A stretch of 63,395 nucleotides of DNA, filler included, from Dimorphilus gyrociliatus (taxonomy: Eukaryota > Animalia > Annelida), in the NCBI GenBank assembly GCA_904063045.1. It is 4 parts of 4 records of this genome, joined end to end, with 100 filler letters (N's around TTAATTAATTAA, not from the genome) between each part and the next. Parts side by side here need not be neighbours in the genome. Positions count along the whole stretch, not along the records: positions 24,665 to 40,304 come from CAJFCJ010000112.1; 3 more parts are not named here. One strand, 5' to 3'. The notes under the pieces are model-generated. The model saw only the letters and a list, made by a program, of their open reading frames with translations. It was not told the origin of the DNA and made no database searches. The position numbers and the translations under genes were made by a program. Positions within the stretch are counted from its first letter, which is position 1. Every line of letters begins with the position of its first letter. Positions 24,665 through 40,304 of this stretch are shown here, piece by piece.

Positions 24665-25782
24665 TTTTTCATTGATTAATTTACATTTTGAATTAATAAT
24701 TTAATTCATGAGCAATTTAAATGTGTATAAAAACTTTTCAATAATGACAGAAATTGTTCGATTGCTCTGTAATTCATTATTCAATTATTACCACTAAACA
24801 ATGAATTTTTAATAATTTGCATTTTCCACCATTTTAAAGACCAACGCAGCCTTTTAACAAACTATTTTTAGAATTTTGTGCACTTAGATATAGTGAATTA
24901 TCAATACTTGGACTTTAGATATCCATTTCTATTTTACAGTCTAATGGTATTGCAATAGCACAATTGTAACAATCATGTATAGCTGTTAAAAAGTTGTAGC
25001 TTGGCAGTTAGATAAAAAAGTAGTTTTCTTACTTTTTAAAACACTTAAATCTATTGTAAAAGTATTTTTCTGTTTGTTTTTATTATTTTGTGAGAGAGCT
25101 TGTCACTCTCTGTTCACATTTCAACCTCTCTCTTATATATACAGCATAAATTGTTTAGATTCAATAAAAACTGCACACAAAATATCTTTTTAAAACATTT
25201 TCTCACTTTCAGTTTTCTTCATTTTCCACTTCTCCTTATCACATGTGACTCGTTGCAGGGTAGGAACAATATTTCTAGTGATTTTGGAAAATTAGCACTT
25301 TGATTACTTTTAGAGTATGCTAGGCCTAGACTGAGGATTAGGTCTGTTTTCAAATAGTGTTTTTTGAATATTATGAATTCAATATTTATCAAAAGATGCT
25401 AAAAAGAAAATTTTGACAAGATTCCTACTCCCCTCTATAATGTAACTCCTTGGATGATTGATATCAATTTCATAAATTATTGAACAAAATTGTACTTTGT
25501 TGTATTGTAATTGTAGGAATTTCTCCTTCTTCAGAACAGTATTCGTCCTTTCCAATCATTTATCAATGCACCAAAGTACTCACACAAATAGAACCTTTCA
25601 AATTCGTCCACAAGTAGTCTTAAGAAATGTAATTTCAGTAGAAATTAATCAACAAAATGCCAGTATTTTGTTTAAAGAATATCTATTGAGTAAATGAGTT
25701 TCTAGTTCTAAACTATTTTAAACAATCACCAGGAATATTAGAAGAATAATTAAAATATTTAAGAGCAGTGTAATTAAACAAC

Positions 25783-26910
25783 CTATTTGCTTAGTTCAAA
25801 AAGATCACTTCCGCAATGCCATATCCGTTCCAGAGAAATTCTTTTAAGTTTTGAACAGTGTTTAAACAAGTTAATTATTATTTTAGACTGGTCTTCGCTC
25901 AAATTACATTCTGTAAAGTTGAGGCATTTTAAAGTATTTGACAAATGAAGAAGTTGTGCACAAATATAGAATAGTCCATTGCCTGTTGTATGATTTCCTG
26001 TCAGGTAGATTGTCTCTAGCTTGGCGCATTCTTTAAAAAGGTTTCCAATATGTCTACATTGCCCATTGTTTAAATTACAACAGCCGAAATTTATCTCTTT
26101 TAAACAGCTTGACGATTGGATGAGTCCTTTACAAATGTTAAATAATCCTTCTCCCATCTGAACATTCCATGCCAAGTTGATTGTGTCTATTTTAGAGCAA
26201 CTTTAGAAAAGCTTTCCAATCTTTCTACATTGTTCCTCTTCTAAATTGCAGCCTTTGAAATCAATCTTTATCAGCTGTTTCACTGATTTTAATGTGTCAG
26301 CAATATTCCTTAATATTTGTTCTGATATTGTTGTATTTTCTTTTAGAGTATTTGAAGAGTTGTGTAGATGTTTACATATATAAAAAATCCATTTTCCATA
26401 TTGTCATTAAATGATAAATTGATCTTTTCAATTTTATGGCAGTTATTTAAAAAATTACCAATTTCTCTGGCCATACTTCCATTTAAAAGACAACTTTTTA
26501 AATAAATTTCTGCTAGAGTATTACAACAATTGTAGAGTCCATCCAAAATAGTAGGCAAGCTGTCTTTTAAATCTTTATTCAATGAAAAGTCAACTTTTTG
26601 TAAAGAACAACATTTCTTTAATAAATCTGCAACATTCTTAATACTATTCCATCCAAATTACAATTGCAAAAGTTTATAGCTTTGAGTCCAATTGACGATA
26701 TTAAAAGTGCTTGGCAAATTTTAGGTAAAAAGTGTTCAACATTTGGATTCCAACTTAAATTAACTTTTTCAATTTTTGAACAGTTTGAAAGCAGATTTGA
26801 TAGAGTTTCACAGTTGTTCTTGCCTAAATCACAATAACATAAATTGATCTTTTGTAATGAATTTGATGAAATGAGTAGTTGTTTAAAAATTAATGATAGG
26901 CCAACTTTCA
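25783..26910 (-). pseudogene. RI-type LRR pseudogene, copy 1
   Basis: LKEINFGCCNL and LETIYLTGN repeats; in-frame TAA after GKLF and indels; 5' end replaced by a Tc1 fragment. Confidence 0.8.
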
Positions 26911-27060
26911 AATCTTCAATTGTATGATGCAATTGAAACATTTTCCAGATATATTGGGCACTGAAGCTAGAAATTGTAAACATTTTGGTAATTTTGTTCA
27001 ATGATAGCCCTTCTTGGCATTTTTCAACAACCAAATAACAAATTTTTTATCAATGACCAT
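26905..27060 (-). mobile_element. Tc1/mariner N-terminal HTH remnant fused in frame to the LRR pseudogene (also about 32530-32685 and 39205-39360)
   Basis: VVEKCQEGLSLNKITKMFTISSFSAQYIWKMFQLHHTIEDLK resembles the Tc1 transposase HTH. Confidence 0.6.
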
Positions 27061-27337
27061 TATTTTTTTGAAAAACCAAAGATATAATTATAATAAAATA
27101 CTTTCCTATTTGATTTATGCAGCTTAACCCCCTTTTTTTGATTAAATAGATGGTGACTCATTTTTAACTAACCCCTTTTTTCGAGATGTATTTACTAAAA
27201 CAGGATTTTATAAAAGAAAAACAATTTTTTGATCATTTTTCGTAAAGGACATTAGTTTATACATATTAATCATTATTATTACCAATTCAAAGTAGCTATT
27301 CAGCATAGCTTAATATCAAAACAAAAAATTTTACAAG

Positions 27338-27532
27338 GTGGCTGGGGACTTTTTGCCTATATTTGCATTCAATTATTATAGAGGGAAAATTTTCCAACAC
27401 GATGGGCCCAGCTGTCATACAGCAGCCAGAGCAAAGGAATACCTAAAGAGAAAGAAAGTTGAAACATTGCATTCATGGCCAGCTAACTGCCCAGACTTCA
27501 ACATTATTGAAGCCAATATGGGGCATATATAA
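27338..27532 (+). mobile_element. Tc1/mariner DDE transposase remnant (also 32961-33155 and about 39636-39825)
   Basis: IFQHDGPSCHTA...WPANCPDFNIIE matches the FQQDNAPCH / WPxxSPDLNPIE consensus. Confidence 0.85.
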
Positions 27533-27772
27533 AAGTATTTTTTAAGACAAAACTCTTCCAATCAATGGATGATGACCTAGTTTTATATATCTAAATCTAA
27601 AAGAATCAACTAATAATATGATAAAATAATTACAATTTTATTCACAAAGTATATTTAAATACAACCATAATAACACACCCATAATGAATTAATTAAAACA
27701 AACAAACAGTGAGTGTTCACAATATGGTATTGGAACAGATGTAACAACTTTGATACACCTGAAAAATTGAAT

Positions 27773-28480
27773 TCAACAATTCAAATGAAGCCACAATACA
27801 TTGATTTGGAAGGTAGAATAGCCATCAAAATTGAAAAGTAACCAGAATGGATCCTTAACAATTTGGAAAGTACCATCAATATACCAGTAGTTGGATTTGG
27901 ATAATAAGTTCAGCTGATGGTTTGTTGCAAAAATTAAGATTCTTTCTCCATTTTCACAAATGTCTTTCTGGAGAAATTCATCAGGTAAAAAAGTTGTGTT
28001 CAAGTTGAAATTATACACTTTTGGTTCAACTGGCCTGAATTTTTGTCTGTTTGAGTTTGCCATCCTTTTTAAGTAATTGATATCAGGAAGACATTTAGCA
28101 TTAGGTTCATATGATAATAGAAATTTTTCAGCAATGCTTCTTCCAGATGCTTTGTTATCACTTTTGCAAATAGTTTTTACATCAGTTTTTACTTTAACAT
28201 CTACTTCCAAATTAGGTTTTCTGTTGTGATTATGTTCCAGATTGCCTTTAATAAATATACTTCCATTTTGTCTTATTCTAGCTACACATCTTTTTTCTTA
28301 CTTCTCACACTGCATACCCAATTGTTGTTGTAAGTGTTTTATGTTTAACAACAAAAGAATATCCATCATTCAATAAAATGTCATGTCCTTTTCTGCTTCC
28401 TCCTTGTACATCTCAAAATCATTCCTCCTGATTGAGTCATTTTCATCTTCTGTATTTTCATCAGTTCCTTCTACATCCAT
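27773..28480 (-). mobile_element. FLYWCH + MULE transposase remnant, frameshifted copy 1
   Basis: Copy of 33396-34106 with single-base indels. Confidence 0.75.
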
Positions 28481-28817
28481 TGATTGGTTTTCTGATTGCT
28501 GAGGACTTTCATAATCAAATGTTGAATCTTTAACCTCAGCAGGATCACTTCTGTTATCATTGAAGTCCTTATTACTTCTTTGTATTGATCAATTTCCAGA
28601 TTTCCAGTAATTCTTAAGGTATTTTTTTTGTTACATCTTGTGCAAACAGGTATGCTAGGTGTTTCTGTGTCAATGTGTTAAGAAAAGATAGTTGCCTAAA
28701 TCATAATTGAAAACTGATGTACCTGAACATTTTAATTTTGGTAGAAATTAATCAGCAAAACACAAGTATTTCATTTAAAGAATATGTATTGAGTAAAATG
28801 AGCAATTACCTACAGTA

Positions 28818-29310
28818 TTACATACATAAAATTTCTTTATATAATGTTTCTACAGCTTTGATTGAATGTTCTAATGAGAAACCCTTTACTGCATATTCAG
28901 CACAGTAGGCACGTCTAGCTGCTTTATCGCTGTGTTTAAGTTCTTCCATAATGGCATCAGCCAGTTCTAAATCATCTTCTACTTGAACCAGACGACCTAC
29001 TTTGCTATCAATAAAATCTGGTAACCACTTGGTTAGTACCCACTACAGGTGTGCCACAAGCAAGGGCTTCAATTGCTACTAGACAAATGGTTCTGTACGA
29101 GAAGGCACAACACTTACATCTGCAATATTGTACATTTTAACTAATGTCTCTTGATTAACGTGACCTAAGAAGTATACATGTTCAAGGTCTAATCTTCTTT
29201 CATACGCTTTAACACACCATAGAGTTCACCATTACCTGCAATAATTGTCATTACTTTACCACAGGTTGATTTTTCGTACGTTTTGCTGCTTTTGCATCAT
29301 CCATTTAAAG
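28818..29310 (-). pseudogene. Inverted, indel-rich 3' fragment of the GT4 gene
   Basis: Reverse complement of about 36190-36689. Confidence 0.8.
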
Positions 29311-29419
29311 TGTGTATTTTTGCATGTACGATAAAGCTTTTGATAAATACATGTTTTACTAGAAGTGGTAATCTAAAATTATTAAAACAGTAGATGCTAG
29401 CACTTATAAGTGCTGCATC

Positions 29420-30005
29420 TATTTTTATTAAATGGTTATGATGAATCTTATTCCATCTCTGGACTTAGTAAGAAACTGTTTTAAGATTTGATGTACAGTC
29501 AAAAGATTGTATCGTAGCTTTTGCAGGAAATTAACACTTTAAGTGTGGATGTATTGCTAAAAGCAGCAAACGTTACGAAAATCAACCTGTGGTAGTATGA
29601 CAATTATTGCAGTAATGGTGAATCTATGTTTTAAAGCGTATGAAAGAGATTTAGACCTTGACATGTATACTTCTTAGGTCACGTTAATCAGAGACATTAG
29701 TTAAAATGTACAATATTGCAGATTAAGTGTTTGCTTCTCGTACAGAACCATTGGTCTAGTAGCAATTGAAGCCTTGCTTGTGCACACCTGTAGTGGGTAC
29801 TAACCAAGGTGGTTTACCAGATTTTATTGATAGCAAGTAGGTCGTCTGGTTCAAGTAGAAGATGATTTAGAACTGCTATGCATTATGGAAGAACTTAAAC
29901 CACGATAAAGCAGCTAGACGTGCCTATGTGTGAATATGCAGTAAAGGTTTCTCATTAGAACATTCATCAAACTGTAGAAACATTATATAAAGAATTTTAT
30001 GTATA
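29420..30005 (+). pseudogene. Forward, indel-rich 3' fragment of the GT4 gene
   Basis: Matches about 36060-36689 with many single-base deletions. Confidence 0.8.
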
Positions 30006-31403
30006 TACTGTAGGTAATTGCTCATTTTACTCAATACATATTCTTTAAATGAAATACTTGTGTTTTGCTGATTAATTCTACCAAAATTACATTTGCTAAG
30101 ACTATTTGTGGACGAATTCTAAAGGTTCTATTTGTGTGAGTACTTTGGCAAATTGGCAAATGATTGGAAAGAATGCTTACAGTTGTAAGAAACCAGAAAT
30201 TCCTCCAATTTCAAAACAACAAAGTACAACCAGTGATGTTTATAACTGAACCAATATTCTAAAGGATTTTTGATATGTTTTCATTGATTAATTTACATTT
30301 TGAATTAATAATTTAATTCATGAGGCAATTTAAATGTGTATAAAAACTTTTCAATAATGACAGAAATTGTTCGATTGCTCTGTAATTCATTATTCAATTA
30401 TTACCACTAAACAATGGAATTTTTAATAATTTGGCATTTTCCACCATTTTAAAGACCAACGCAGCCTTTTAACAAACATATTTTTAGAATTTTTGTGCAC
30501 TTAGATATAGTGAATTATCAATACTTGGACTTTAGATATCCATTTCTATTTTACAGTCTAATGGTATTGCAATAGCACAATTGTAACAATCATGTATAGC
30601 TGTTGAAAAAGTTGTAGCTTGGCAGTTAGTATAAAAAAGTAGTTTTCTTACTTTTTAAAACACTTAAATCTATTGTAAAAGTATTTTTCTGTTTGTTTTT
30701 ATTATTTTGTGAGAGATGCTTGTCACTCTCTGTTCACATTTCAACCTCTCTCTTATATATACAGCATAAATTGTTTAGATTCAATAAAAACTGCACACAA
30801 AATATCTTTTTAAAACATTTTCTCACTTTCAGTTTTCTTCATTTTCCACTTCTCCTTATCACATGTGACTCGTTGCAGGGGTAGGAACAATATTTCTAGT
30901 GATTTTGGAAAATTAGCACTTTGATTACTTTTAGAGTATGCTAGGCCTAGACTGAGGATTAGGTCTGTTTTCAAATAGTGTTTTTTGAATATTATGAATT
31001 CAATATTTATCAAAAGATGCTAAAAAGAAAATTTTGACAAGATTCCTACTCCCCTCTATAATGTAACTCCTTGGATGATTGATATCAATTTCATAAATTA
31101 TTGAACAAAATTGTACTTTGTTGTATTGTAATTGTAGGAATTTCTCCTTCTTCAGAACAGTATTCGTCCTTTCCAATCATTTATCAATGCACCAAAGTAC
31201 TCACACAAATAGAACCTTTCAAATTCGTCCACAAGTAGTCTTAAGAAATGTAATTTCAGTAGAAATTAATCAACAAAATGCCAGTATTTTGTTTAAAGAA
31301 TATCTATTGAGTAAATGAGTTTCTAGTTCTAAACTATTTTAAACAATCACCAGGAATATTAGAAGAATAATTAAAATATTTAAGAGCAGTGTAATTAAAC
31401 AAC

Positions 31404-32530
31404 CTATTTGCTTAGTTCAAAAAGATCACTTCCGCAATGCCATATCCGTTCCAGAGAAATTCTTTTAAGTTTTGAACAGTGTTTAAACAAGTTAATTATT
31501 ATTTTAGACTGGTCTTCGCTCAAATTACATTCTGTAAAGTTGAGGCATTTTAAAGTATTTGACAAATGAAGAAGTTGTGCACAAATATAGAATAGTCCAT
31601 TGCCTGTTGTATGATTTCCTGTCAGGTAGATTGTCTCTAGCTTGGCGCATTCTTTAAAAAGGTTTCCAATATGTCTACATTGCCCATTGTTTAAATTACA
31701 ACAGCCGAAATTTATCTCTTTTAAACAGCTTGACGATTGGATGAGTCCTTTACAAATGTTAAATAATCCTTCTCCCATCTGAACATTCCATGCCAAGTTG
31801 ATTGTGTCTATTTTAGAGCAACTTTAGAAAAGCTTTCCAATCTTTCTACATTGTTCCTCTTCTAAATTGCAGCCTTTGAAATCAATCTTTATCAGCTGTT
31901 TCACTGATTTTAATGTGTCAGCAATATTCCTTAATATTTGTTCTGATATTGTTGTATTTTCTTTTAGAGTATTTGAAGAGTTGTGTAGATGTTTACATAT
32001 ATAAAAAAATCCATTTTCCATATTGTCATTAAATGATAAATTGATCTTTTCAATTTTATGGCAGTTATTTAAAAAATTACCAATTTCTCTGGCCATACTT
32101 CCATTTAAAAGACAACTTTTTAAATAAATTTCTGCTAGAGTATTACAACAATTGTAGAGTCCATCCAAAATAGTAGGCAAGCTGTCTTTTAAATCTTTAT
32201 TCAATGAAAAGTCAACTTTTTGTAAAGAACAACATTTCTTTAATAAATCTGCAACATTCTTAATACTATTCCCATCCAAATTACAATTGCAAAAGTTTAT
32301 AGCTTTGAGTCCAATTGACGATATTAAAAGTGCTTGGCAAATTTTAGGTAAAAAGTGTTCAACATTTGGATTCCAACTTAAATTAACTTTTTCAATTTTT
32401 GAACAGTTTGAAAGCAGATTTGATAGAGTTTCACAGTTGTTCTTGCCTAAATCACAATAACATAAATTGATCTTTTGTAATGAATTTGATGAAATGAGTA
32501 GTTGTTTAAAAATTAATGATAGGCCAACTT
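31404..32530 (-). pseudogene. RI-type LRR pseudogene, copy 2
   Basis: In-frame TAA at 31824-31826 separates two in-frame ORFs; the same stop is present in all three copies. Confidence 0.8.
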
Positions 32531-33395
32531 TCAAATCTTCAATTGTATGATGCAATTGAAACATTTTCCAGATATATTGGGCACTGAAGCTAGAAATTGT
32601 AAACATTTTGGTAATTTTGTTCAATGATAGCCCTTCTTGGCATTTTTCAACAACCAAATAACAAATTTTTTATCAATGACCATTATTTTTTTGAAAAACC
32701 AAAGATATAATTATAATAAAATACTTTCCTATTTGATTTATGCAGCTTAACCCCCTTTTTTTGATTAAATAGATGGTGACTCATTTTTAACTAACCCCTT
32801 TTTTCGAGATGTATTTACTAAAACAGGATTTTATAAAAGAAAAACAATTTTTTGATCATTTTTCGTAAAGGACATTAGTTTATACATATTAATCATTATT
32901 ATTACCAATTCAAAGTAGCTATTCAGCATAGCTTAATATCAAAACAAAAAATTTTACAAGGTGGCTGGGGACTTTTTGCCTATATTTGCATTCAATTATT
33001 ATAGAGGGAAAATTTTCCAACACGATGGGCCCAGCTGTCATACAGCAGCCAGAGCAAAGGAATACCTAAAGAGAAAGAAAGTTGAAACATTGCATTCATG
33101 GCCAGCTAACTGCCCAGACTTCAACATTATTGAAGCCAATATGGGGCATATATAAAAGTATTTTTTAAGACAAAACTCTTCCAATCAATGGATGATGACC
33201 TAGTTTTATATATCTAAATCTAAAAGAATCAACTAATAATATGATAAAATAATTACAATTTTATTCACAAAGTATATTTAAATACAACCATAATAACACA
33301 CCCATAATGAATTAATTAAAACAAACAAACAGTGAGTGTTCACAATATGGTATTGGAACAGATGTAACAACTTTGATACACCTGAAAAATTGAAT

Positions 33396-34106
33396 TCAAC
33401 AATTCAAATGAAGCCACAATACATTGATTTGGAAGGTAGAATAGCCATCAAAATTGAAAAGTAACCAGAATGGATCCTTAACAATTTGGAAAGTACCATC
33501 AATATACCAGTAGTTGGATTTGGATAATAAGTTCAGCTGATGGTTTGTTGCAAAAATTAAGATTCTTTCTCCATTTTCACAAATGTCTTTCTGGAGAAAT
33601 TCATCAGGTAAAAAAGTTGTGTTCAAGTTGAAATTATACACTTTTGGTTCAACTGGCCTGAATTTTTGTCTGTTTGAGTTTGCCATCCTTTTTAAGTAAT
33701 TGATATCAGGAAGACATTTAGCATTAGGTTCATATGATAATAGAAATTTTTCAGCAATGCTTCTTCCAGATGCTTTGTTATCACTTTTGCAAATAGTTTT
33801 TACATCAGTTTTTACTTTAACATCTACTTCCAAATTAGGTTTTCTGTTGTGATTATGTTCCAGATTGCCTTTAATAAATATACTTCCATTTTGTCTTATT
33901 CTAGCTACACATCTTTTTTTCTTACTTCTCACACTGCATACCCAAATTGTTGTTGTAAGTGTTTTATGTTTAACAACAAAAGAATATCCATCATTCAATA
34001 AAATGTCATGTCCTTTTCTGCTTCCTCCTTGTACAATCTCAAAATCATTCCTCCTGATTGAGTCATTTTCATCTTCTGTATTTTCATCAGTTCCTTCTAC
34101 ATCCAT
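33396..34106 (-). mobile_element. FLYWCH zinc finger + truncated MULE transposase N-terminus
   Basis: GSRKGHDILLNDGYSF...WVCSVRSKKKRCVARI...EHNH (FLYWCH) and WYIDGTF (first MULE Asp), then truncated. Confidence 0.8.
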
Positions 34107-34916
34107 TGATTGGTTTTCTGATTGCCGAGGACTTTCATAATCAAATGTTGAATCTTTAACCTCAGCAGGATCACTTCTGTTATCATTGAAGTCCTTATTA
34201 CTTTCTTTGTATTGATCAATTTCCAGATTTGTTAACTTCTTAAGGCTAACAGTACATTTTCTTTTGTTACATCTTGTGCAAACAGGTATGCTAGGTGTTT
34301 CTGTGTCAATGTGTTAAGAAAAGATAGTTGCCTAAATCATAATTGAAAACTGATGTACCTGAACATTTTCTATGGATAAGATTCTCACAAAGGCAGCATT
34401 TCAAATATTTTTGCCTTCCATAAATTTTTGAATCACAATTGTTGCACTTTGAAACCATGTTGTTTCAACAGAACAAATTCACTTGATTATTAAAAAATCA
34501 CTGTCCTTTCCAAATATTCAAAATGGCTGAAATTTTGTTTATAGCAAATATTGAAATAATTTGTTATTAAAGAAAATATATTAAATTGTAATATTTTGCA
34601 TCAAAAATCTAGTTAAAAAGCTTTAAATATTTACCTGTTCAAAATCTACAAAGAAGCACTTTGTCCAAATTTATTCAGGACATACAGCTTACCTTTGAAA
34701 GTATATGCTGTCCAAAGTGAAAGTTTATTTCAACCACCTTCACTATTGAACTTCCTGCCATTTCACTTTTCAACAATATTTAATATTTTTAAATAATACT
34801 TCACATTGATAAAATATTACTTTTTACAGTCTGAGTATATACATATATATCTATTATTAACAAAACCATTTGATGAAAAATCAATAAATAAAAGAAAGAG
34901 GAAAGAGGGTGGGAAT

Positions 34917-34965
34917 GTACCTGGGTATGTTCACACCTGCCTTGGGTACATTCGCACCCAGGTAC
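34917..34965. repeat. Small GC-rich hairpin element
   Basis: gtacctgggt ... acccaggtac inverted repeat with internal gggtacattcgcaccc-type subrepeats. Confidence 0.5.
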
Positions 34966-35484
34966 GTTTGCACCTGACCCTGAAGAAAATATATGATATA
35001 TGGAGTTATGATAATAATTTGAAAGAAAAAAACTTGATTCTGATTCTGATCATACAGATATACACAGGTTTCTCCTCCAGTAAAAGATTTTTCCATATTG
35101 TAGCACATATTTTTTTCTTTAAAAGAAAAAAGAAAAAAGACAACATTCTGGCTATGCAGTGTTAGGAGCAAAAGAAACAAATGTTCAGCAACAGTCAGCT
35201 AGCAGGGGAACAACTTTTATCCTAGTTTAATGATTTTTGAAAAATCTTTAACAAATCTTATATAATTACCACACAATGCCACAAAACTCTTTTGAATAGT
35301 ACAATCCTGGCTCAATACTACTTCTCTATTGTGAGATTATAGTTGACAAATGTATGTGTGCAAAGAAAAAGACTTTTAATATTTGGACTATCAAAATTTA
35401 CTTTGTAGCATATTTATGCTGACTACTTTTATAACAAGTTTCTATTGTTATAGCAAGAAATTTCTCATAAATTACAAGTAAGGG

Positions 35485-36689
35485 ATGATGAGTGTGAAGA
35501 TTTTGTTAGTTAATCATTTTCCATTGGAGGGGACTGGTAGTGGCGTGTACACCAAAAATTTGGCAAAGGCTTTAGTAAGTTTTGGCCATAAGGTTAAAAT
35601 CATTTATCCAGAACACGAAGACAAGACATATAAAGGATTTGAATCAAGAGTCATTAAGTTTAAGGGACCAAATACAGTAAAGCCTGAAGTGGATTTCAAT
35701 TTTCCATGTTTTACAACCCATCCAAGAAGTAATACAACTTATTATGAATTATCAGATGATCAAATGAAGACTTACATGGATAAATATATAGAAGTGGTTC
35801 AAGAGGAAGTAGATACTTTTAAACCAGATATTATCCATGCACAGCATTTATGGATTACACCTTATGCTGCTATGTTAACAGGTGTGCCATATGTTATTAC
35901 TGCCCATGGTACGGATTTAAAAGGCTTTGTAAAAGATGACAGATACCATAGTTTTGCTATAGAAGGGGTGGCTAATGCTAAGATGATTATTACCATCTCT
36001 AAACAAGTAGATGCTGAAACAGCACAACTGTATAAAGTGCCGAGCAATAAACGTATGATTTTATTAAATGGTTATGATGAATCCTTATTCCATCCTCTGG
36101 ACTTAAGTAAAGAAACTGTTTTAAATGAATTTGATGTTACAGTCAAAACAGATTGTATCGTAGCTTTTGCAGGAAAATTAACACACTTTAAAGTGTGGAT
36201 GTATTGCTAAAAGCAGCAAAACGTTACGAAAAATCAACCTGTGGTAAAGTAATGACAATTATTGCAGGTAATGGTGAACTCTATGGTGTGTTAAAGCGTA
36301 TGAAAGAAGATTTAGACCTTGAACATGTATACTTCTTAGGTCACGTTAATCAAGAGACATTAGTTAAAATGTACAATATTGCAGATGTAAGTGTTGTGCC
36401 TTCTCGTACAGAACCATTTGGTCTAGTAGCAATTGAAGCCCTTGCTTGTGGCACACCTGTAGTGGGTACTAACCAAGGTGGTTTACCAGATTTTATTGAT
36501 AGCAAAGTAGGTCGTCTGGTTCAAGTAGAAGATGATTTAGAACTGGCTGATGCCATTATGGAAGAACTTAAACACAGCGATAAAGCAGCTAGACGTGCCT
36601 ACTGTGCTGAATATGCAGTAAAGGGTTTCTCATTAGAACATTCAATCAAAGCTGTAGAAACATTATATAAAGAAATTTTATGTATGTAA
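35485..36689 (+). CDS. Bacterial-type GT4 (GT-B, MshA/BshA-like) glycosyltransferase; intronless; -1 frameshift at 36193
   Basis: KILLVNHFPLEGTGSGVY, DIIHAQHLW, VITAHGTD, FAGKLTHFK(G)VDVLLKA and EPFGLVAIE (EX7E), ALACGTPVVGTNQGGLPDFI. Adding one G gives a ~400-aa ORF. Confidence 0.9.
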
Positions 36690-36704
36690 TACTGTAGGTA
36701 ATTG

Positions 36705-36900
36705 CTCATTTTACTCAATACATATTCTTTAAATGAAATACTTGTGTTTTGCTGATTAATTTCTACCAAAATTACATTTGCTAAGACTATTTGTGGACGA
36801 ATTCTAAAGGTTCTATTTGTGTGAGTACTTTGGCAAATTGGCAAATGATTGGAAAGAATGCTTACAGTTGTAAGAAACCAGAAATTCCTCCAATTTCAAA
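36705..36900 (-). repeat. Trailer repeat starting about 17 bp after the GT4 stop; inverted relative to 37800-38025
   Basis: ctcattttactcaatacatattctttaaatgaaatac... is the reverse complement of the repeat at 25500-25720, 31120-31340, 37800-38025 and 49385-49640. Confidence 0.85.
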
Positions 36901-38086
36901 ACAACAAAGTACAACCAGTGATGTTTATAACTGAACCAATATTCTAAAGATTTTTGATATGTTTTCATTGATTAATTTACATTTTGAATTAATAATTTAA
37001 TTCATGAGGCAATTTAAATGTGTATAAAAACTTTTCAATAATGACAGAAATTGTTCGATTGCTCTGTAATTCATTATTCAATTATTACCACTAAACAATG
37101 GAATTTTTAATAATTTGGCATTTTCCACCATTTTAAAGACCAACGCAGCCTTTTAACAAACATATTTTTAGAATTTTTGTGCACTTAGATATAGTGAATT
37201 ATCAATACTTGGACTTTAGATATCCATTTCTATTTTACAGTCTAATGGTATTGCAATAGCACAATTGTAACAATCATGTATAGCTGTTGAAAAAGTTGTA
37301 GCTTGGCAGTTAGTATAAAAAAGTAGTTTTCTTACTTTTTAAAACACTTAAATCTATTGTAAAAGTATTTTTCTGTTTGTTTTTATTATTTTGTGAGAGA
37401 TGCTTGTCACTCTCTGTTCACATTTCAACCTCTCTCTTATATATACAGCATAAATTGTTTAGATTCAATAAAAACTGCACACAAAATATCTTTTTAAAAC
37501 ATTTTCTCACTTTCAGTTTTCTTCATTTTCCACTTCTCCTTATCACATGTGACTCGTTGCAGGGTAGGAACAATATTTCTAGTGATTTTGGAAAATTAGC
37601 ACTTTGATTACTTTTAGAGTATGCTAGGCCTAGACTGAGGATTAGGTCTGTTTTCAAATAGTGTTTTTTGAATATTATGAATTCAATATTTATCAAAAGA
37701 TGCTAAAAAGAAAATTTTGACAAGATTCCTACTCCCCTCTATAATGTAACTCCTTGGATGATTGATATCAATTTCATAAATTATTGAACAAAATTGTACT
37801 TTGTTGTATTGTAATTGTAGGAATTTCTCCTTCTTCAGAACAGTATTCGTCCTTTCCAATCATTTATCAATGCACCAAAGTACTCACACAAATAGAACCT
37901 TTCAAATTCGTCCACAAGTAGTCTTAAGAAATGTAATTTCAGTAGAAATTAATCAACAAAATGCCAGTATTTTGTTTAAAGAATATCTATTGAGTAAATG
38001 AGTTTCTAGTTCTAAACTATTTTAAACAATCACCAGGAATATTAGAAGAATAATTAAAATATTTAAGAGCAGTGTAATTAAACAAC

Positions 38087-39210
38087 CTATTTGCTTAGTT
38101 CAAAAAGATCACTTCCGCAATGCCATATCCGTTCCAGAGAAATTCTTTTAAGTTTTGAACAGTGTTTAAACAAGTTAATTATTATTTTAGACTGGTCTTC
38201 GCTCAAATTACATTCTGTAAAGTTGAGGCATTTTAAAGTATTTGACAAATGAAGAAGTTGTGCACAAATATAGAATAGTCCATTGCCTGTTGTATGATTT
38301 CCTGTCAGGTAGATTGTCTCTAGCTTGGCGCATTCTTTAAAAAGGTTTCCAATATGTCTACATTGCCCATTGTTTAAATTACAACAGCCGAAATTTATCT
38401 CTTTTAAACAGCTTGACGATTGGATGAGTCCTTTACAAATGTTAAATAATCCTTCTCCCATCTGAACATTCCATGCCAAGTTGATTGTGTCTATTTTAGA
38501 GCAACTTTAGAAAAGCTTTCCAATCTTTCTACATTGTTCCTCTTCTAAATTGCAGCCTTTGAAATCAATCTTTATCAGCTGTTTCACTGATTTTAATGTG
38601 TCAGCAATATTCCTTAATATTTGTTCTGATATTGTTGTATTTTCTTTTAGAGTATTTGAAGAGTTGTGTAGATGTTTACATATATAAAAAAATCCATTTT
38701 CCATATTGTCATTAAATGATAAATTGATCTTTTCAATTTTATGGCAGTTATTTAAAAAATTACCAATTTCTCTGGCCATACTTCCATTTAAAAGACAACT
38801 TTTTAAATAAATTTTCTGCTAGAGTATTACAACAAATTGTAGAGTCCATCCAAAATAGTAGGCAAGCTGTCTTTTAAATCTTATTCAATGAAAAGTCAAC
38901 TTTTGTAAAGAACAACATTTCTTTAATAAATCTGCAACATTCTTAATACATTCCCATCCAAATTACAATTGCAAAAGTTATAGCTTTGAGTCCAATTGAC
39001 GATATTAAAAGTGCTTGGCAAATTTTAGGTAAAAAGTGTTCAACATTTGGATTCCAACTTAAATTAACTTTTTCAATTTTTGAACAGTTTGAAAGCAGAT
39101 TTGATAGAGTTTCACAGTTGTTCTTGCCTAAATCACAATAACATAAATTGATCTTTTGTAATGAATTTGATGAAATGAGTAGTTGTTTAAAAATTAATGA
39201 TAGGCCAACT
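38087..39210 (-). pseudogene. RI-type LRR pseudogene, copy 3
   Basis: Same sequence and same stop as copies 1 and 2, plus further indels. Confidence 0.8.
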
Positions 39211-40304
39211 TTCAAATCTTCAATTGTATGATGCAATTGAAACATTTTCCAGATATATTGGGCACTGAAGCTAGAAATTGTAAACATTTTGGTAATTTTG
39301 TTCAATGATAGCCCTTCTTGGCATTTTCAACAACCAAATAACAAATTTTTATCAATGACCATTATTTTTTGAAAAACCAAAGATATAATTATAATAAAAT
39401 ACTTTCCTATTTGATTTATGCAGCTTAACCCCCTTTTTTTGATTAAATAGATGGTGACTCATTTTTAACTAACCCCTTTTTCGAGATGTATTTACTAAAA
39501 CAGGATTTTATAAAAGAAAAACAATTTTTGATCATTTTTCGTAAAGGACATTAGTTTATACATATTAATCATTATTATTACCAATTCAAAGTAGCTATTC
39601 AGCATAGCTTAATATCAAAACAAAAAATTTTACAAGGTGGCTGGGACTTTTGCCTATATTTGCATTCAATTATTATAGAGGGAAAATTTTCCAACACGAT
39701 GGCCCAGCTGTCATACAGCAGCCAGAGCAAAGGAATACCTAAAGAGAAAGAAAGTTGAAACATTGCATTCATGGCCAGCTAACTGCCCAGACTTCAACAT
39801 TATTGAAGCCAATATGGGCATATATAAAAGTATTTTTTAAGACAAAACTCTTCCAATCAATGGATGATGACCTAGTTTTATATATCTAAATCTAAAAGAA
39901 TCAACTAATAATATGATAAAATAATTACAATTTTATTCACAAAGTATATTTAAATACAACCATAATAACACACCCATAATGAATTAATTAAAACAAACAA
40001 ACAGTGAGTGTTCACAATATGGTATTGGAACAGATGTAACAACTTTGATACACCTGAAAAATTGAATTCAACAATTCAAATGAAGCCACAATACATTGAT
40101 TTGGAAGGTAGAATAGCCATCAAAATTGAAAAGTAACCAGAATGGATCCTTAACAATTTGGAAAGTACCATCAATATACCAGTAGTTGGATTTGGATAAT
40201 AAGTTCAGCTGATGGTTTGTTGCAAAAATTAAGATTCTTTCTCCATTTTCACAAATGTCTTTCTGGAGAAATTCATCAGGTAAAAAAGTTGTGTTCAAGT
40301 TGAA

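Follow-up and report, generated by a model that had tools for sequence, protein, structure and literature searches.

The window analysed here is a stretch of 63,395 nucleotides (filler included) from the dinophilid annelid Dimorphilus gyrociliatus, and our subject is a gene for a family 4 glycosyltransferase (GT4) that lies in the piece at 24665–40304 (record CAJFCJ010000112.1). We found that this gene is of bacterial (Bacillota, Clostridia) origin, that the bacterial DNA is limited to positions 35430–36704, and that the DNA on both sides is animal. The arrangement probably reflects a genuine and fairly young bacterium-to-animal transfer, with both putative junctions inside one assembled contig. 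Judged from the sequence, the integration is likely to be real, and there is an even chance that the insert is a passenger of the surrounding repeat array rather than an established host gene. In the course of events that we propose, a 1.3-kb piece would have come from a conserved operon in a Clostridia bacterium of marine or sediment habitat, a member of the clade that includes, among named bacteria, Fusibacter, Acidaminobacter, Senegalia and Helicovermis. This piece, with one complete GT4 gene, would have inserted into a transposon-rich repeat array with NLR-like LRR genes in the worm, and would then have been copied together with the array.

Bacterial origin and limits of the insert

The bacterial segment and the features within it were located as follows.

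35430–36704, plus strand: whole bacterial-derived segment, 1275 bp, comprising the gene, 55 bp upstream and 15 bp downstream (blastn at 87% identity, alignment)
35430–35510, plus strand: remnant of the upstream 411-aa gene, its last 27 codons (tblastn, residues 385–411, 85% identity, E = 7e-9)
35485–36689, plus strand: GT4 glycosyltransferase coding sequence (open reading frames, Pfam matches, 90% identity to the bacterial proteins P0001–P0003)
35485–35490, plus strand: two in-frame ATG codons, at −9 and −6 nt of the bacterial GTG/TTG start (comparison with ten relatives)
35527–35544, plus strand: glycine-rich loop EGTGSG (motif scan)
35692–35730, plus strand: DFNFPCFTTHPRS stretch (motif scan)
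35905–35916, plus strand: HGTD motif (motif scan)
36411–36437, plus strand: EX7E motif (EPFGLVAIE) of the sugar-nucleotide-binding domain (motif scan)

The gene is made up of two adjoining open reading frames (ORFs) on the plus strand, 35485–36210 (241 aa) and 36195–36689 (164 aa). Residues 18–199 of the first ORF matched the N-terminal domain family Glyco_transf_4 (PF13439; 68.7 bits against a cut-off of 28.5), and the second ORF matched the C-terminal domain family Glycos_transf_1 (PF00534; 110.9 bits against a cut-off of 26.4); the latter domain also scored 49 bits with the Pfam family 'GT4 in conflict systems'. The alignment with the bacterial relatives is free of gaps, including any intron-like gap, save at 36192/36193. 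There a single base is absent from the window (TTTAAAGTGTGG, against TTTAAGGGTGTAG in the bacteria), and this absence splits the frame. No stop codon was found within the 1.2-kb gene, and 145 of the 148 columns that are at least 97% conserved keep their residue. The original prediction had described an intronless GT-B enzyme of about 400 amino acids with HGTD and EX7E motifs and had marked position 36193 for verification. The domains, the motifs and the lack of introns were borne out, but the gene is assembled as two ORFs, and a one-base deletion relative to the bacterial frame was confirmed at 36192/36193. The DFNFPCFTTHPRS stretch, which had been taken for a distinctive insert, occurs with one or two changes in the nearest bacterial relatives and is hence a feature of the family, not private to the window gene.

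A protein search with the N-terminal piece gave 1570 matches, of which the best three (P0001–P0003) were 90% identical, a second group was 79–82% identical and the remainder about 60% identical. The named relatives at about 60% were Clostridia/Bacillota (Acidaminobacter, Senegalia, Helicovermis and various metagenome-assembled genomes, MAGs). Every named match among the best 120 of the 1570 was bacterial, as were the unnamed ones whose contig was inspected. At the DNA level, the gene was 87% identical to two contigs of uncultured Clostridia (L001 and L002; blastn). Among species-representative genomes, the closest named relative was an uncultured Clostridia MAG, 86% identical to P0002, followed by Acidaminobacter and Fusibacter at 64–66%. 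A scan of JGI metagenomes with the N-terminal piece returned bacterial relatives only (49–81%) and no host copy. In a tree of 124 rows, the window gene was sister to P0001–P0003 (support of 97 in the Shimodaira–Hasegawa-like approximate likelihood-ratio test, SH-aLRT) within a 13-row clade (SH-aLRT 100). The gene is thus nested inside a bacterial clade that holds no animal relatives, which upholds the earlier assignment to Firmicutes-type GT4 proteins. An origin from a giant virus or a phage was also considered and rejected, as scans of viral contigs for the GT4 and for an LRR ORF of the flanks were empty.

Ten loci of relatives were fetched from the two closest groups, and eight of them had flanks on both sides of the gene. 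One gene order was shared by all eight: a two-component system, an SLT lytic transglycosylase, a 398/411-aa protein, the GT4, a cNMP-binding protein of 580 aa and GalU (392.6 bits; cut-off 326.8), followed by an M20 peptidase, a methyltransferase and PFOR. No family match was found for the 398/411-aa protein. The uncharacterised bacterial GT4 genes (P0001–P0003, a Clostridia MAG, Fusibacter, Acidaminobacter, Senegalia and Helicovermis) are 90% to about 60% identical to the window gene over the full length, have the same length and share its HGTD and EX7E motifs and the FPCFT(S/T)HPRS loop. They differ in that they start with GTG or TTG and lie in an operon, whereas the window copy stands alone amid animal repeats, with an ATG start and a one-base break.

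The cluster of SLT, 398/411-aa protein, GT4, cNMP-binding protein and GalU is itself a conserved and uncharacterised set of genes in marine and sediment Clostridia, seen at L001:7940–13855 and also on contigs L002, L008–L010, L012 and L013.

In the donor operon, the GT4 begins within the 411-aa gene, whose final 27 codons are retained in the window. A blastn comparison of L001 and L002 with the window showed nothing beyond 35430–36704 and two partial copies of the gene, and the matches of tblastn with 13 proteins of the bacterial locus were confined to the GT4 and to the 27 codons of its upstream neighbour. The fragment therefore runs from 35430 to 36704, and the claim that the gene has no bacterial neighbours was confirmed.

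Animal flanks and the repeat array

The piece at 24665–40304 is free of gaps and contains no N. The following features surround the bacterial segment.

24666–28733, 30278–34369 and 36962–40304: copies 1–3 of a host repeat unit of about 4 kb (unit A), 99.2% identical to one another
28733–29326, minus strand: partial inverted copy of the GT4 3′ end, comprising its last 530 bp and the adjoining 70 bp of repeat R (corresponding to 36174–36774; 1 mismatch and 10 gaps relative to the full copy)
29423–30020, plus strand: partial second GT4 copy (equivalent to 36059–36704), which likewise runs into repeat R (relative to the full copy, 1 mismatch and 42 gaps, most of them of one base)
31404–32657, minus strand: NLR-type (RNI) LRR ORFs in unit A copy 2 (family matches)
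32961–33155, plus strand: Tc1/mariner remnant with a DDE_3 motif region (E = 2e-4); it separates the LRR ORFs from the FLYWCH/MULE remnant
33396–34106, minus strand: remnant of a FLYWCH/Mutator-like element (MULE), by family match; its ORF runs into a MULE-like stretch
34370–35429: AT-rich host spacer with no long ORF and with short matches to D. gyrociliatus repeats (sequence comparison)
36705–36914, minus strand: host repeat R (about 210 bp), which abuts the bacterial segment; 81–88% identical to D. gyrociliatus contig L019
25490–25698, 31111–31319 and 37794–38002 (plus strand) and 30021–30229 (minus strand): further copies of repeat R (repeat comparison)

Each copy of unit A carries LRR ORFs, the Tc1/mariner DDE_3 remnant and a FLYWCH–MULE ORF; the LRR ORFs of copies 1 and 3 are broken, probably as artefacts of consensus noise. 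An exhaustive protein search with the FLYWCH ORF gave two top matches, both 82% identical and both D. gyrociliatus proteins, one a FLYWCH+MULE protein and the other a NACHT+LRR+FLYWCH+MULE model. Neither the FLYWCH ORF nor the LRR ORF gave a match in word-indexed protein searches; it was the exhaustive search that found these D. gyrociliatus relatives of the FLYWCH ORF. The LRR ORF was 30–32% identical to the LRR region of the D. gyrociliatus NACHT–LRR model. At the DNA level, D. gyrociliatus contigs were matched at 79–91% identity by repeat R, by short stretches of the spacer and by the FLYWCH/MULE region, with a GC content of 29–32% in the window piece and in the matched contigs alike. The genome paper on D. 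gyrociliatus names Mariner and MULE elements as its DNA transposons (PMC7854359).

The MULE remnant that had been noticed upstream of the gene corresponds to the FLYWCH/MULE feature at 33396–34106. The host repeat reported to begin 17 bp past the stop codon does adjoin the gene, but its first base, 36705, is the 16th beyond the stop codon. The 3′ end of the gene and its junction with this repeat are present three times in the piece. An insertion at a transposon end was considered and set aside: there is no target-site duplication, and D. gyrociliatus homology extends about 14 bp past the junction. We make no claim about mechanism.

Several further observations were made in these flanks. The NACHT+LRR+FLYWCH+MULE model matched above is CAD5126542 (P0122, L019:10001–19028), a 2396-aa prediction in which an NLR-like gene and a transposon have probably been annotated as one; its NLR-like and FLYWCH/MULE neighbourhood recurs in the window. 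Two inverted repeats of 205 nt, at 36710–36914 and 37794–37998, are 84% complementary with 879 nt between them, and the pair resembles a miniature inverted-repeat transposable element (MITE). No target-site duplication was seen at this pair, and contig CAJFCJ010000059 (L019) of D. gyrociliatus carries several copies of the MITE-like repeat. A short cysteine-rich ORF (34306–34458, minus strand), located where unit A meets the spacer, gave weak C1/PHD-finger matches.

Passenger, host gene or artefact

The case for a passenger was drawn from the following features: no RNA run holding the stretch, no intron, no canonical poly(A) signal and relaxed constraint. No RNA run is on record among the sequencing runs that hold 34370–36960, and neither AATAAA nor ATTAAA occurs within 500 bp downstream of the gene; a TATA-like site lies about 225 bp upstream. 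Constraint was evaluated by Tajima-type counts with four outgroups. At codon positions 1 and 2, 20–26 changes were unique to the window and 4–9 to its sister (p from 6e-5 to 0.06), and at position 3 the counts were 31–51 and 42–57, respectively. For sites polarised by at least three of the four outgroups, the counts were 19:11 versus 2:25 (Fisher's exact test, p = 2e-5). Maximum-likelihood branch lengths at third positions were unreliable because the outgroups were saturated, and were given no weight; window-specific changes were too sparse for a reading of their GC-to-AT direction. The Tajima-type counts show that constraint is relaxed on the window lineage. A faster-evolving, unsampled donor lineage would yield the same picture. 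The original prediction had proposed that the gene gives the host a new glycosylation or detoxification activity; with no RNA run holding the stretch, a frameshift in the assembly, relaxed constraint and no poly(A) signal, this proposal found no support.

The alternative is domestication, in which the worm would express an intact 401-aa GT4 from a new ATG and would transfer glucose from UDP-glucose, or the sugar of another UDP-sugar, to an acceptor in the host or from its environment, such as a compatible solute, a component of the glycocalyx or cuticle, or a xenobiotic. We consider this unlikely, though a number of observations favour it and count against passenger status. The gene is uninterrupted by stops over 1.2 kb and keeps nearly all of its conserved columns. 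Only 2 of the 30 window-specific amino-acid changes (S17T and A162V) fall in columns that are at least 97% conserved, which make up 148 of 398 columns (37%); the probability of such avoidance is 0.00015, or 0.02 when the count is restricted to the 17 excess changes. Some constraint has therefore persisted on the window lineage. In each of the ten bacterial relatives, the start codon is GTG or TTG behind a Shine-Dalgarno-like AGGGG or AGGAG, whereas the window reads ATG ATG where the nearest relatives read GTG ACG (two substitutions), with a purine at −3. The paired ATG codons would permit eukaryotic initiation with the glycine-rich loop kept. The ATG at −6 is also present in two more distant bacteria (L003 and L015), which weakens the argument for a gained start. 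Pairwise dN/dS (the ratio of non-synonymous to synonymous divergence) to the nearest bacterium was 0.058, with dS = 0.74; however, most of this divergence arose while the gene was still in bacteria. Domestication also sits poorly with the location of the gene in a transposon and repeat array, with the relaxed constraint on the window lineage and with the finding of no RNA run that holds the stretch, no intron and no poly(A) signal.

The one-base break bears on both readings. The three unit A copies differed by 3 mismatches but by 61 gaps, almost all of which span a single base and most of which lie in homopolymers. The contig thus carries long-read consensus noise of about 0.28% per base per copy, a rate that predicts about 3.4 spurious indels per 1205 bp and at least one with a probability of 0.97. 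A lone frameshift within this noise is therefore not evidence for a pseudogene, and the gene may be intact, its frameshift being assembly noise. Against this, the partial copy at 29423–30020 also lacks the G at the frameshift site, so the frameshift could be real and predate the duplication. A real, shared frameshift and a consensus error appear to us about equally probable.

Returning to the integration itself, the main competing account is an artefact, in which chimeric long reads or the assembler fused worm repeats with DNA of a bacterium from the culture or the gut, so that the worm genome would have no such gene. We consider this improbable, and the points that tell against a real integration are the following. 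The D. gyrociliatus assembly was built from PacBio RSII reads with PBcR, Quiver and Pilon, and four rounds of bacterial decontamination were needed (PMC7854359). The consensus is noisy, as described above, and the 42 gaps in 904 columns in one region suggest very low coverage. The inverted copy and the copy at 29499–30089 form a near-perfect palindrome (28733–30089, arms of about 600 bp, 91% identity). This palindrome may be a genuine inverted duplication or may stem from a fold-back read; its GT4 fragments resemble fold-back chimeras. The protein collection held no record of the gene's product in either form, and an exact look-up of the 241-aa ORF product was empty.

Occurrence in sequencing runs cuts both ways. 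Of 280 words sampled from 34370–36960, about half flank and half gene, fractions of 0.83–0.98 were held by five runs from two studies: four runs of a 2020 study under one organism label and one run of a 2017 study under another. Such holding shows co-occurrence, not linkage. A 2024 run with the same species label (273 million letters) held 0.03 of the words. Several of the holding runs are very small (1–123 million letters) and yet contain 83–98% of the words, which could hint at high copy number, at targeted or long-read data, or at polymorphism between cultures.

An artefact would nevertheless require two chimeric joins that happen to enclose just one gene, the first 55 bp ahead of the start codon and the second 15 bp past the stop; moreover, an identical 3′ junction recurs three times. 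Four further runs, one of them from a different study and year, hold words of both flank and gene. At the DNA level, the allele differs by 13% from every bacterial sequence found, and the excess of changes at codon positions 1 and 2 is unexpected for a living bacterial gene. The original claim of a genuine integration thus stands as regards the animal flanks in a gap-free contig, the threefold 3′ junction and the presence of gene and flank words in runs of two studies. Vertical descent from an old animal or eukaryotic GT4 family, for which no support was found, is so improbable that it can be set aside, given the bacterial matches described above, the 87% DNA identity to bacteria with the tail of a bacterial neighbour gene retained, and the lack of introns.

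Predicted biochemistry and comparison with known transfers

The encoded protein would be a retaining GT-B glycosyltransferase that binds a nucleotide sugar in its C-terminal Rossmann domain and an acceptor at its N-terminal domain. The sugar donor is probably UDP-glucose, because GalU is present in the donor operon. UDP-glucose is present in the animal cytosol, and therefore the enzyme could in principle act without bacterial partners.

With a 90%-identical bacterial proxy as the query (phmmer, E-values 7e-33 to 9e-18), the nearest solved structures were sucrose-phosphate-synthase-like proteins (9dcm, 8vrf and 8uag), BshA (2jjm, 3mbo and 5d00), MshA (3c4q) and GlgM (6tvp). These enzymes share the GT-B fold, the retaining mechanism and the EX7E sugar-nucleotide domain with the predicted protein. 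However, the bacterial proxy P0002 scored 106.8 bits against an NCBIfam equivalog cut-off of 273.7 for BshA and 116.5 bits against 462.5 for MshA, and it reached no equivalog cut-off. Orthology of the window gene to BshA, MshA or the other solved GT4 enzymes was rejected on these scores, which lie far under the cut-offs; the acceptors of those enzymes are therefore not transferable to the window gene.

A bolder possibility is that the GT4 is intact, expressed and amplified with the surrounding NLR-like LRR genes, and that it acts in defence or surface glycosylation. From the sequence context we regard this as a long shot; if true, it would be a recent and still datable functional horizontal gene transfer (HGT) into an animal known for its compact, conservative genome. 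A silent insert would instead capture the starting material of HGT, namely foreign DNA that has landed in a transposon island. The contig also carries a caution, namely that noisy long-read contigs require validation of junctions.

To our knowledge, well-documented bacterium-to-animal transfers are few outside rotifers, nematodes and arthropods. The present candidate is unusually clean: its donor operon is known, its boundaries are sharp and, among living bacteria, its nearest relative shares 87% DNA identity. Integration, age and any domestication are therefore directly testable.

We found no HGT analysis in the D. gyrociliatus genome paper (PMC7854359). The transfer of a sugar-transferase gene from bacteria to an animal is already a known phenomenon, to which the window gene adds a candidate. 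The UDP-glycosyltransferases of Tetranychus urticae (PMC10731231, cited in PMC13342648) are likewise animal sugar-transferase genes gained from bacteria. They belong to GT1, have expanded to about 80 expressed genes and have a demonstrated role in detoxification, whereas the window holds one predicted GT4 gene. The foreign genes of bdelloid rotifers (PMC4632278) offer a likeness of setting, being intronless bacterial genes amid transposons in a microscopic aquatic invertebrate; they differ in that the rotifers acquired foreign genes on a large scale and express many of them.

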